Positions 14,051 to 58,431 of a DNA stretch of 64,000 nucleotides are shown here, piece after piece. Location of the stretch: the sequence record OR228459.1. One strand, given 5' to 3'. Within the stretch, counting starts at the first letter, position 1. Every line of letters begins with the position of its first letter. Made by a program: the position numbers and the translations under genes. Below the pieces are notes generated by a model. The model did not search any database, was not told the origin of the DNA, and saw only the letters and a list, made by a program, of their open reading frames with translations.

Positions 14051-14233
14051 ATGAGCGACGTTTTTTCTTTTATGAGAGATGTTGAGTACGTAATAGTACT
14101 AGAAGGTTCTATTCAATTAACAGGTATGGTTGAAGAAACTTATGATAACGGTATTCAGTTACATGATGGAACCTGCATCCCACAGGATAAAATTTTATTT
14201 TTCAAAGCAAATCTTGGGACAAATCCCGAATAA
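14051..14233 (+). CDS. small hypothetical protein
   Basis: GGAG SD before ATG 14051. Confidence 0.6.
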   Translation: MSDVFSFMRDVEYVIVLEGSIQLTGMVEETYDNGIQLHDGTCIPQDKILFFKANLGTNPE

Positions 14234-14244
14234 TGTGATATAAT
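14214..14244 (+). promoter_or_regulatory. phage-specific GGGACA-class promoter
   Basis: TTGGGACAAA-N9-ATGTGA-TATAAT. Confidence 0.85.
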
Positions 14245-14272
14245 AAACACATCAATAACACAGGAGAAAAAA

Positions 14273-17084: not shown

Positions 17085-17115
17085 TTGGGACAAATCGGAA
17101 ATGATGTGATATAAT
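17085..17115 (+). promoter_or_regulatory. phage-specific GGGACA-class promoter for the DHFR-RNaseH-Dda operon
   Basis: TTGGGACAAA-N9-ATGTGA-TATAAT. Confidence 0.85.
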
Positions 17116-17145
17116 ATAAAAACATACAACTAACGAGGAACATAT

Positions 17146-45399: not shown

Positions 45400-45894
45400 A
45401 TGTTTGAATGGGATCAAGAGAAGTACTTTGATCCTACCGAGGACGGTTTAACTCACATCAATACATATAGTAAAGGAAGAACCGTATTGGGGAGGATGCT
45501 ATCAAATTTTGCATACTCCCCTTTTGTGTATGAACCATACGGGAAATTTGATTCAGTTGAGGGATTCTGGTACTGGTACTTAACTGGACAGAAGCATGAA
45601 GACTTGAGAACAGTAAGTGGTTCATATGCTAAAGTACTTGGTAGGAAATATGAAAGTGATAGGGTAGAACATTCTCTCACTGAAGAAACAATTGAAGTAA
45701 TGCAAGGTGCAATGATTAGTAAGATTGCACAGAATAAAGAACTACAGGAAATGTTAATTAGTAGTACTTTGCCTCTATGTCATTACTATTTCATGTATGG
45801 ACGTGTCATAAATCCCTTTGATGGTCATGATTGGTTCTCCGAGACATTGGAGGATATTCGGACGGTATTGAAACTTGGGACAAATGATGTTTAA
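45400..45894 (+). CDS. NADAR-family ADP-ribose hydrolase (T4 gp30.3-like)
   Basis: HINTYSKG.T.LGRMLSNFAYSPF, FDSVEGFW, LR..SG..AK..G. Confidence 0.7.
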   Translation: MFEWDQEKYFDPTEDGLTHINTYSKGRTVLGRMLSNFAYSPFVYEPYGKFDSVEGFWYWYLTGQKHEDLRTVSGSYAKVLGRKYESDRVEHSLTEETIEVMQGAMISKIAQNKELQEMLISSTLPLCHYYFMYGRVINPFDGHDWFSETLEDIRTVLKLGTNDV

Positions 45895-45905
45895 TGTGAT
45901 ATAAT
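45875..45905 (+). promoter_or_regulatory. phage-specific GGGACA-class promoter driving the candidate ncRNA
   Basis: TTGGGACAAA-N9-ATGTGA-TATAAT inside the last codons of the NADAR gene. Confidence 0.85.
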
Positions 45906-45910
45906 ATGTG

Positions 45911-46261
45911 TAGATATAACAATTGTGGCTGCTTTATGCAGACGTACTAAAACCGAAACCCTTGAAAACGTAAAGGGACGATGAGCATGACCACACATGC
46001 GAAGTGCAGATGAAACCCGCTCGGCGGCAATGCGGCACTATAAAAGGACACGTAAGGCACGTTAAGTCCTCTTGATAGACATATGAGGTCACTCACCAAA
46101 ATGCTAAGGGAGACGTTTATACGTCGCATATAGAGCTTGATCGAATAGGCTTTGTATGATGTGGACTAAGACCCCGACCGTTGCATATGACTGTGATAGA
46201 GAGAAACAGAGCAACCCGCTTTCGTTCTTTGACCAGTTTTAGTACGCTATAGTTGTATCTA
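45911..46261 (+). ncRNA. candidate ~350-nt structured non-coding RNA, family unassigned
   Basis: Starts 6 nt after a -10 box; about 46% GC by hand count; ends pair (45911-45920 with 46252-46261; 45943-45953 with 46236-46246); at least 6 internal hairpins; no credible ORF. Confidence 0.7.
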
Positions 46262-46516
46262 AAATTCAGAGAAATTCACAATTCGATAATTCCGAGGCTA
46301 CCAGCGTCAGAATCAATAATCAATAATCAGTACTTTAATTAGTACTTTTTTATTGTCTTCATTCCCCAATGGGGGGATGAAATTGCCTCTACAAACCTCG
46401 TCAGGAATAAAAGTACAATATGAATTGAGTTACGATAATACGAACGTAGTGAGTATTAAGAGTAACGAAAATTCTTAGACAATCGTAGATTGGCTAATTA
46501 GACAATAGGAACAATA

Positions 46517-47482
46517 ATGAATAAATTAAACAGATCACAAGGTTGTTTAATGGGACTAGCTGTAGGTGATGCAGTAGGAACTACCTTAGAATTTAAACAA
46601 AGAGATTCAGAGAATATCACTGATATGGTAGGTGGTGGCCCATTCCAATTAGAAGTAGGTCAATGGACTGATGATACCAGTATGGCATTATGTTTAGGCT
46701 ATGCATTGCTAGAAGATCATAAAGTAGAAACTTCTGATTGGTCTAGATTGCAATTAGTTAATTACGTTGATTGGTACAAAAATGGTTATTGTAGTTCTAA
46801 TGGATACTGCTTTGATATTGGCGGTACTACTAGTAATGCATTACTAAATTTCATCCGTAATGGTACACTTGTTAACAACGATCATTTTCTTGATTCTGGT
46901 AATGGTAGTTTAATGCGTTTAGCTCCAATCCCAATCTATTATAATACTGGTGCTGATGTTGATAAGTTCACCTATTTGTGTTATGCAGCCGATATGAGCA
47001 GTTCAACTACACATGCAAGTACTTTATGTCGTCAGTCATGTGTTGCGTTTGCTGTACTACTTAATCGTGCTTTAAATGGCCCGATTGAATTAGAAAATGT
47101 TGAACATGATGTATTACAATCAAAGCGTTCATTACTTTCTTTCCCAGAAAAAGTTTGGGAAGGTCTTGTGAGTGAACCTTTAGTACTAGAAATCATGAAT
47201 GGTTCTTATAAGAATAAGTCACGTGATGAAATTAGTTCTAGTGGGTATGTTATTGATAGCTTAGAAGCCGCTCTATGGTGCTTCTGGAACACCGAAAACT
47301 TCCGTGACGCAATCCTATTAGCTGCTAACTTAGGTGACGATGCAGACACCGTAGCGGCAATTACAGGGCAGATTGCAGGTGCTTTCTATGGTCTTGATGG
47401 TATACCAGATGAATGGGTACAGAAGATTGCCAAGAAAGATGAAATTTTACAATTAGCAGAGGACTTGACAGATGGGAATTAA
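46517..47482 (+). CDS. ADP-ribosylglycohydrolase (DraG/ARH family)
   Basis: LAVGDAVG, GQWTDDTSMAL, GNGSLMRLAP, TTH, GDDADTVAAITGQIAGA. Confidence 0.93.
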   Translation: MNKLNRSQGCLMGLAVGDAVGTTLEFKQRDSENITDMVGGGPFQLEVGQWTDDTSMALCLGYALLEDHKVETSDWSRLQLVNYVDWYKNGYCSSNGYCFDIGGTTSNALLNFIRNGTLVNNDHFLDSGNGSLMRLAPIPIYYNTGADVDKFTYLCYAADMSSSTTHASTLCRQSCVAFAVLLNRALNGPIELENVEHDVLQSKRSLLSFPEKVWEGLVSEPLVLEIMNGSYKNKSRDEISSSGYVIDSLEAALWCFWNTENFRDAILLAANLGDDADTVAAITGQIAGAFYGLDGIPDEWVQKIAKKDEILQLAEDLTDGN

Positions 47483-49155: not shown

Positions 49156-49582
49156 TTCTGAAAAGTTAAACAAGATGTTGTATACATTCTTTTTAGCTGA
49201 TGATGGGATTTACAATGAAGAACGTATCTTTTCTTACATGTCTTGTAATGCAACGAGATCAAAAGAATCATTTGACACATTCTATTATATGGATGCAAGA
49301 TGTTCATTGAATTTTGATTGTATTGAGGGTGTATTCAATAAGTTAATACTTTATCCTGATAGTTATAATTCAGACGTACCATTTTTGAGTATTGATAGGG
49401 ATGGTATGATTATTGGTGGTTGTGCAGGTAATGATAAAGATCTTTTCTTTTATAAAGATTGCATTCCTACCAGTACTGAATTAAAGAAAATTGGTATGAA
49501 TTGCGAAACATTGGATTTACTTAATTTCATATTGATTAAATTCAAACCAATCATGGATAGGATACAGAAGAAATTTAAATAA
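49148..49582 (+). CDS. hypothetical protein
   Basis: 144-aa coupled ORF. Confidence 0.65.
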   Translation: MTNSEKLNKMLYTFFLADDGIYNEERIFSYMSCNATRSKESFDTFYYMDARCSLNFDCIEGVFNKLILYPDSYNSDVPFLSIDRDGMIIGGCAGNDKDLFFYKDCIPTSTELKKIGMNCETLDLLNFILIKFKPIMDRIQKKFK

Positions 49583-49585
49583 ATC

Positions 49586-49616
49586 TTGGGACAAACTAGG
49601 ATTTATGTGATATAAT
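49586..49616 (+). promoter_or_regulatory. phage-specific GGGACA-class promoter upstream of tRNA-Ser
   Basis: TTGGGACAAA-N9-ATGTGA-TATAAT. Confidence 0.85.
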
Positions 49617-49624
49617 ATAATTAC

Positions 49625-49715
<91 letters not shown>

Positions 49716-51906: not shown

Positions 51907-51913
51907 AAAAAAC

Positions 51914-51944
51914 TTGGGACAAATCACTGAAAATGTGATATAAT
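51914..51944 (+). promoter_or_regulatory. phage-specific GGGACA-class promoter upstream of tRNA-Thr
   Basis: TTGGGACAAA-N9-ATGTGA-TATAAT. Confidence 0.85.
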
Positions 51945-51992
51945 ATAATTATGATAAGGAACGTGTTTGTGTTATTATCCTTATCATTTTCT

Positions 51993-58390: not shown

Positions 58391-58391
58391 C

Positions 58392-58422
58392 TTGGGACAA
58401 AATCAGGTTCATGTGATATAAT
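58392..58422 (+). promoter_or_regulatory. phage-specific GGGACA-class promoter upstream of the tRNA-like RNA
   Basis: TTGGGACAAA-N9-ATGTGA-TATAAT. Confidence 0.85.
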
Positions 58423-58431
58423 ATAATTATC

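Follow-up and report, generated by a model that had tools for sequence, protein, structure and literature searches.

A family of pseudoknotted three-domain RNAs in Rak2/121Q/GAP32/BF-type jumbo phages and Enterobacterales islands

The stretch of 64,000 nt from sequence record OR228459.1 that we analysed, hereafter the window, belongs to Klebsiella phage fENko-Kae01 (Kae01), a 360 kb jumbo myovirus of the Rak2/121Q/GAP32 group, and the query region is 100% identical to this record. Between a hypothetical gene and a gene for an ADP-ribosylglycohydrolase, positions 45895-46516 are without annotation in the deposited record. A previous inspection of the letters, made without database searches (the sequence-only reading), had flagged 45911-46261 in this gap as a structured RNA of about 350 nt with its own promoter. 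Our results show that a non-coding RNA gene of about 600 nt, at roughly 45912-46495, contains the flagged stretch as its 5' two-thirds. The gene belongs to a family of three-domain pseudoknotted RNAs common to all Rak2/121Q/GAP32/BF-type jumbo phages, with about four copies per genome, and present in small integrative islands of Enterobacterales.

A sigma-70-type promoter precedes the RNA on the + strand (45877-45905). It consists of the -35 element GGGACA, a 17-nt spacer and the TATAAT of an extended -10, TGATATAAT, and the promoter scan counted 10 of 12 matches plus the upstream TG, so that the claim of an own promoter is borne out and the RNA should start near 45912. The promoter is part of a conserved box of about 30 nt, CTTGGGACAAA-N9-ATGTGATATAAT, present in six + strand copies within the window (14210-14245, 17085-17117, 45871-45907, 49582-49618, 51910-51946 and 58391-58424). 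The copy at 49582 stops 7 nt 5' of a tRNA-Ser gene (49625), and another lies about 45 nt upstream of tRNA-Thr. Since the box also stands directly before tRNA-Ser, the promoter of the RNA fits a stable-RNA promoter, and the box probably represents the strong early or stable-RNA promoter class that the phage offers to the host polymerase. A -10-like element was found 255-390 nt upstream of the core in nearly every family member. The sequence-only reading was also right about coding capacity and base composition: overlapping open reading frames (ORFs) are short, occur on the - strand only and do not exceed 60 aa, and the GC content is 0.44-0.47 against about 0.33-0.37 in the flanks. The minimum free energy of the flagged region is -103.5 kcal/mol (z = -3.8 against shuffles), but the opposite strand is nearly as stable (z = -3.15), and folding energy alone therefore proves little.

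The comparison with relatives was far more informative. BLASTN found the region in about 70 jumbo-phage records, with phages of Escherichia, Klebsiella, Salmonella, Erwinia, Serratia, Yersinia, Cronobacter, Pectobacterium and 'Xanthomonas'. In these records the matches sit in gene-free gaps of 570-910 nt or beneath spurious small ORFs; 'hypothetical proteins' of 23-86 aa are annotated over the RNA on either strand in several phage genomes (L002, L013, L017, L005, L018 and others), and these are almost certainly false gene calls. An exact core pattern made from the two best-conserved motifs, run against IMG/VR, gave two to four copies per phage genome. Kae01 itself has four paralogues, at about 39, 181, 265 (the window copy) and 312 kb, all on the same strand and only about 35-45% identical across 600 nt outside the core, and orthologous copies occupy matching positions in other phage genera and are grouped in the tree. 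In alignments of the relatives, invariant blocks alternate with length-variable hairpins from the -10 element to about 46495, and insertions and deletions fall at hairpin tips, with lengths that are not multiples of three.

The alignments carry strong evidence of a conserved fold. RNAalifold predicted 72 pairs from 30 non-redundant copies, with compensatory double changes in 47 of them. Covariance models were built for two domains, R2 for domain 1 (D1) and R1 for domain 2 (D2), and all copies were realigned to them; anchor-split MAFFT alignments (46 sequences) were inferior to a plain alignment and were dropped in favour of the covariance-model alignments. As pairing controls, the helix columns were slid by 1-3 positions and 500 shuffles were made. 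In D1, 98.5% of cells are paired across 58 distinct sequences, as against 33-41% after sliding, and both sides change in 17 of 21 pairs; the corresponding values for D2 are 97.7% across 72 distinct sequences, 35-52%, and 22 of 29 pairs. None of the 500 shuffles reached the observed pairing in either domain, and compensatory double changes occur in 39 of the 50 pairs modelled in D1 and D2 together. On the + strand of the window, D1 spans 45948-46113 (R2, 153.2 bits, E 5.6e-44) and D2 spans 46118-46311 (R1, 162.7 bits, E 2.5e-42; the sole R1 copy in the window), scores that are partly given by construction because the window copy is in the seed alignments of both models. Bacterial copies outside the seeds reach 143-171 bits with both. 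Many pairs are G-U; these would become A-C mismatches if the other strand were transcribed, which identifies the + strand as the RNA strand. The check for homologues and covariation that the sequence-only reading had proposed thus returned strong conservation and compensatory change across relatives.

D1 contains H1 with the loop GAAAAYGUA, an invariant GAUGAG, H2, H4 nested within H3, H5, the hairpin UGAG-GUCA-CUCA and an invariant AAGGGAG. D2 begins with the H6 hairpin (46127-46158) and continues through H7, an invariant GACCGTTGCA (46176-46185) and a three-way junction of H9, H10 and H11 to a tail ending in CGTCAG. In the D2 model, H9 pairs TGTGA at 46192-46196 with TCACA at 46276-46280 on the + strand, and H10 on the same strand pairs GAGAG (46199-46203) with CTTTC (46219-46223) below an invariant 15-nt loop. 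The most informative element lies within D2, a pseudoknot of 7 bp on the + strand between the H6 apical loop (ATCGAAT, 46140-46146) and ATTCGAT at 46281-46287, directly 3' of the H9 3' strand. All seven of its pairs covary and 99.4% of cells are paired, the partner sets in other copies being UUGUAU/AUACAA, UUCAUGU/ACAUGAA, CUGUAU/AUACAG, CUUGAAU/AUUCAAG and UUCGCAU/AUGCGAA. The invariant unpaired stretches in junctions and loops, namely GAUGAG, AAGGGAG, GACCGUUGCA (which precedes H10) and the 15-nt loop of H10, are long, which argues for a precise three-dimensional core. The window copy has the marks of the family throughout: matches to R2 and R1, GAUGAG, AAGGGAG, GACCGUUGCA, GCAACCCGC and the pseudoknot between H6 loop and tail.

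Much of the local folding noted earlier agrees with this model. The hairpins GCATG/CATGC (H2), CCGC/GCGG (H4), AGGAC.../...GTCCT (H5) and CATATAGAGC/GCTTTGTATG (H6) are backed by covariation, and two more of those listed coincide with variable hairpins of the RNA. A proposed CTGT/ACAG helix fell away, its bases belonging to H9 and H10, and the alternative pairing AGTCC/GGACT found no support. The variable hairpin GACGT/ACGTC (46112-46125, + strand) is the site of inserts of up to about 60 nt in the alignments of other copies. Further candidate pairings, GUUGC/GCAAC, GAUGAG with CUCGUC or CGUC, and the H6 loop with CGACC, involve positions that are invariant or do not compensate. A hammerhead-like reading of CAGAUGAG...CGAAG was rejected, the GAA part being unconserved and core U4 being A.

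The size of 350 nt given by the sequence-only reading falls short, for conserved covarying RNA runs on to 46311 and is followed by a third domain. Between D2 and this domain lies a variable hairpin with AGTACT arms and a T-run (46328-46352, + strand). Its pairs covary (alignment columns 630-633 with 640-643) and a U-run then follows in most phage copies; hairpin and U-tract are absent from EJP2, L039, L047, L048 and the island copy L185. The terminator scan did not call the hairpin, which has only two G-C pairs, and the element looks like a weak or partial intrinsic terminator. Domain 3 (D3; about 46358-46495, + strand) is kept in all phage and island copies and reaches as far as the ADP-ribosylglycohydrolase gene, whose start codon lies at 46517. 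It comprises a CCCC/GGGG hairpin (46364-46376), a GAUGA...UCGUC stem (about 46376-46404), GAATTGAG...CGAAAATTC (46422-46474) and the distal hairpin CAATC-GTA-GATTG (46480-46492), which covaries at five of five pairs. A small ORF from the ATG after the G-run (46378) was considered as coding and rejected: it measures 1-62 aa among the copies, lies in two frames and loses its start codon in several.

The closing helix TAGATATAAC/GTTGTATCTA, which the earlier inspection had placed at the ends of the molecule, is real, yet it does not mark the end. It is present in the closest relatives of the window copy and in insert-bearing copies of BF/GAP32/Yen9-04 type, where 9 to 10 of its 10 positions pair, and compensatory variants such as TAGATGTAAC/GTTACGTCTA occur. 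The 5' strands of this helix and of a second one (45911-45920 and 45943-45953) belong to the 5' leader (45912-45954, + strand), which also holds a variable hairpin GGCTGC...GCAGAC and differs across the other paralogue groups. Both 3' strands (46252-46261 and 46236-46246) lie in an insert inside H11 (46233-46262, + strand) that is found in one paralogue group only; 14 of 30 aligned copies lack it and have only a short hairpin as H11. Because the 3' strand sits in an insert of one paralogue group that is itself closed by H11, it is not the RNA end, and both long closing helices are a peripheral clamp of that group, joining the leader to the H11 insert. As a separate observation, one short module, a hairpin of UACAAUAUAG type or its GAUCCGUCC variant, occurs as an insert at two sites of the RNA, 3' of AAGGGAG and within H11, for instance in L042, BF_b, 121Q_b, L039 and XaC1 (alignment A5, columns about 335-395 and 527-565), which suggests a movable peripheral element.

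The claim that the RNA matches no known family held up. Neither the gathering scores nor E values up to 10 produced a match for the window copy among the 4227 families of Rfam 15 (cmscan); 16 other copies had none at E up to 5, the island copy L068 none at gathering score, and 18 bacterial loci yielded nothing relevant. The covariance models of GOLLD, ROOL, HEARO and OLE were unmatched. ARAGORN reported three tRNAs and no tmRNA in the window, and a tRNA-like domain with a tag frame was not found. Two RNAs of Pseudomonas phage PA5oct, ncRNA001 and ncRNA002 (PMC7318152), were considered as homologues and rejected, since neither model scored them above 12.5 bits with filters off, which is noise. 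Our literature searches found no paper describing the RNA family.

In view of these searches it is very unlikely that we are dealing with a divergent form of a known class such as RNase P RNA, tmRNA, a group I or II intron, 6S, GOLLD, ROOL or HEARO. Its size and its association with mobile elements do recall GOLLD and ROOL, and it has short RNase P-like stretches, CGACC..GCA..AGAGAG..CAAMCCGC and AUGACUGU..ACAGA..ACCCGCUU, which we take to resemble E. coli RNase P RNA. The likeness to RNase P that the sequence-only reading had remarked on dissolves in the covariance model, where the look-alike segments stand in other structural contexts: GAGAG is a strand of H10, TGTGA pairs with TCACA, the CR-V-like segment lies within H9/H10, and the CR-I motif GAGGAAAGUCC is absent, as is the long-range P4. 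Type A RNase P RNA is comparable to D1 plus D2 in overall size and also has a pseudoknotted core and a few of the same short motifs, but the RNA described here lacks its CR-I motif, P4 helix and helix order. As for introns, the RNA is intergenic, starts straight after its own promoter rather than within a gene, and has no Rfam intron match. GOLLD and ROOL (RF01998, RF03087; cryo-EM, PMC12286853) are among the closest in kind, being about 0.6-0.8 kb long, intricately folded with many conserved junctions, borne by phages or prophages often near tRNA genes, and stand-alone. They differ in showing no detectable sequence or structure similarity to our RNA and in their hosts, mainly Firmicutes and environmental bacteria as opposed to Enterobacterales jumbo phages and islands; our RNA is further set apart from them by having four diverged paralogues in each genome.

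The family extends into bacterial chromosomes. Of 5426 complete E. coli genomes only two have a chromosomal match, at 77% identity, and full D1 and D2 were recognised by both models in E. coli LR-29-1, Citrobacter amalonaticus P55, Silvania hatchlandensis, Serratia sp. 2723, Enterobacteriaceae RIT714 and two metagenome-assembled genomes. A search of plasmids gave no copy. All three domains are present in the island copy. In E. coli LR-29-1 (NZ_AP027515.1, about 3473.2-3483.7 kb; L235:1474-12024) the unannotated RNA lies in a 10.8-kb island between ybaA and ffs, which also encodes a tyrosine integrase interrupted by IS3, a membrane protein and a resolvase and has DUF4326, DUF488 and dual-OB genes. 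A recurring module was seen at bacterial and metagenome loci: a tyrosine integrase or large serine recombinase, the RNA, a convergent CI-like repressor gene (HTH plus S24 peptidase), a winged-helix protein, a membrane protein of 257-286 aa, an LprI-like protein and cargo. The metagenome islands L185:3733-14625 and L202:6968-13745 both encode a large serine recombinase, the RNA, the CI-like repressor, the winged-helix protein, a 286-aa membrane protein, the LprI-like protein and an invertase; next in the L185 island comes the Kiwa defence pair KwaA/KwaB, and the L202 island adjoins pilin and type II/IV secretion ATPase genes. The membrane protein had no homologue in the phage records and no Pfam, PHROG or PADLOC match. 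In the tree the island copies lie within the diversity of the phage paralogue groups, in two or more separate clades, which indicates repeated exchange between phages and islands. The notion of a universal bacterial RNA was examined and dropped: a loose 19-base core pattern hit at least 120 loci in 596 Gb of bacterial genomes, where by our own estimate about 117 are expected by chance, and R1 confirmed only six of them (four of the first 99 screened, plus L165 and L170).

The genes around the RNA vary from copy to copy. The Kae01 181-kb and BF 174-kb copies have opposite-strand genes on both sides and a bidirectional terminator at the end, in islands the RNA is convergent with the CI-like repressor gene, and in three of the four Kae01 copies the RNA runs into co-oriented genes. 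In phage RaK2, one copy stands directly downstream of ORF244, annotated as an RNA polymerase sigma factor (L006:221-1117), a neighbour that the other copies examined do not share. The position of the 181-kb and 174-kb copies between opposite-strand genes, the convergence in islands and the variety of neighbours argue for a stand-alone gene.

This bears on the idea of a cis-regulatory leader (a giant riboswitch, T-box or processive antiterminator), in which D1 and D2 would sense a ligand, an RNA or a protein and gate passage past the hairpin and U-tract. Its targets would be the downstream genes in some copies and, by antisense action, the island CI-like repressor or the baseplate genes at the 181-kb copy in others. 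We consider such a role improbable. The sequence of promoter, large fold, hairpin with U-run and co-oriented genes in three Kae01 copies, repeated in some relatives, has the layout of a leader, and the island RNA is aimed at the 3' end of the repressor gene. The supposed switch, however, is missing from the five copies named above while all else is kept, it is not called as a terminator, and D3 beyond it is itself conserved and structured. A search of the fold for a competing helix showed the weak hairpin with U-run in most but not all copies and no conserved antiterminator. The downstream genes have no common feature, and the 181-kb, 174-kb and island copies have no co-oriented downstream gene such as a riboswitch, T-box or attenuator would precede, the 181-kb/174-kb group ending at its own bidirectional terminator with no gene behind.

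The same variation speaks against a partnership with the flanking genes. The downstream gene of the window copy (46517-47482) clearly encodes an ADP-ribosylglycohydrolase (227 bits), and the upstream ORF (45400-45894) has a sub-threshold NADAR match, at 17 bits where the cut-off is 35. The label of 'ADP-ribose erasers' that the sequence-only reading gave to the pair is therefore only half supported. The RNA had been supposed to work with such ADP-ribose-removing enzymes, for instance as a decoy or sensor for an ADP-ribosylating toxin, and the window paralogue is indeed upstream of an ADP-ribosylglycohydrolase gene in Kae01, BF, XbC2, EJP2, Hallingskeid and Kaldavass. Its orthologues in GAP32, CBB, 121Q, SNUABM_12 and Yen9-04 have different neighbours, and neither the other three Kae01 paralogues nor any island copy has ADP-ribose genes nearby. 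We therefore regard the connection as largely refuted by the varying gene neighbourhoods and any such function as exceedingly unlikely. Elsewhere in the window, the tRNA-Ser gene (49625-49715) was assigned by ARAGORN the anticodon ACT, with A at position 34; this is unusual among bacterial-type tRNAs and may reflect inosine modification or a miscalled anticodon.

The constant genomic positions of the paralogues call for a different comparison. On the model of ColE1 RNA II or of the T4 R-loop origins oriF and oriG, the RNA could be a cis element of a replication origin, a folded early transcript that would stay hybridised to its template and prime leading-strand synthesis, and islands would carry a copy to be replicated by phage or host machinery. 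Four dispersed copies at positions conserved across genera lend this proposal weak support, as T4 also has several dispersed sites per genome, with about five origins. A host-type early promoter precedes every copy, the unit of about 600-750 nt is RNA II-like, and at 46364-46376 a C4 run leads into an invariant G6 run. Capture by integrative islands without a recognisable replication gene would also be in keeping with a cis element. The models likewise share with our RNA a host-polymerase transcript of several hundred nt from a strong promoter, and ColE1 needs its RNA folded. The GC skew, however, is about 0 across the RNA and negative at 46200-46399, with flanks at +0.2 to +0.3, so that the transcript lacks the G-richness usual in R-loop primers, a weak argument against the proposal. 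Neither iterons nor an AT-rich unwinding element came to light, and there is no homology to the RNA of either model. Origins of the T4 type need no conserved tertiary fold and have no conserved pseudoknotted core, whereas here junction and loop nucleotides are invariant and the pseudoknot covaries. An origin function is on balance unlikely.

The explanation that we favour, at slightly less than even confidence, is that the RNA is a self-contained folded particle that would act in trans in the conflict between phage, host and island. The host sigma-70 polymerase would initiate at the extended -10 promoter, a type shared with the phage tRNA genes, and the RNA would be made from the start of infection. 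D1 and D2 would form compact multi-helix junctions locked by the 7-bp pseudoknot of the H6 loop. Some transcripts would probably stop at the hairpin and U-tract at 46328-46352, and the remainder would pass through D3 and, in the window copy, into the ADP-ribosylglycohydrolase mRNA. The product may serve as a protein-binding scaffold, a ribozyme-like core or a decoy, rather than as a leader of neighbouring genes. The conflict setting is suggested by the full copies in integrase-bearing islands, one of them with KwaA and KwaB. The pRNA of phi29 is likewise a structured RNA encoded by a phage, transcribed from an early promoter of its own and possessing a covarying loop-loop pairing, but it is about 120-174 nt long and single-copy, its loop-loop pairing is intermolecular, and no homology exists; in our RNA the covarying helix of loop and tail can form within one molecule.

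Several points weigh against action in trans. Four paralogues kept at conserved positions fit a cis role at least as well, and their maintenance is the strongest argument for some position-dependent role. A leader function could still be served by the three Kae01 copies with co-oriented genes. No partner protein for the RNA was found, the 257-286-aa membrane protein of the islands being absent from phages, and we infer the start, the ends and the abundance of the RNA from its sequence.

A bolder version of the trans-acting particle is possible but doubtful. The family may be a new large pseudoknotted 'ornate' RNA at the centre of a three-way conflict, in which the phages would need four specialised paralogues and defence-carrying islands would have captured the RNA at least twice. 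The islands could subvert a process for which the phage relies on the RNA (replication, transcription or assembly, for example), or they could use the RNA as a decoy or sensor directed at these phages, and the core might be a new ribozyme or protein-binding site.

To our knowledge, few large structured RNAs have been recognised in bacteria and phages, namely ribosomal RNAs, RNase P, tmRNA, group I and II introns, OLE, GOLLD, ROOL and HEARO, and each of these revealed new biology or a new RNA architecture. The comparative support for the family presented here is unusually strong, with about 60-70 distinct sequences in which nearly every modelled helix and the pseudoknot covary. Our results also correct genome annotations, since many records call spurious small 'hypothetical proteins' over the RNA. 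The occurrence of the RNA in culturable phages of E. coli, Klebsiella, Salmonella, Serratia and Erwinia makes it open to direct testing. The combination of four ancient paralogues per genome, positions conserved across genera and independent transfer into chromosomal islands with integrases, a CI-like repressor and genes for defence is not known from other RNA families described so far. The retention of the paralogues, their conserved positions and the transfer into islands point to a role over which mobile elements compete.

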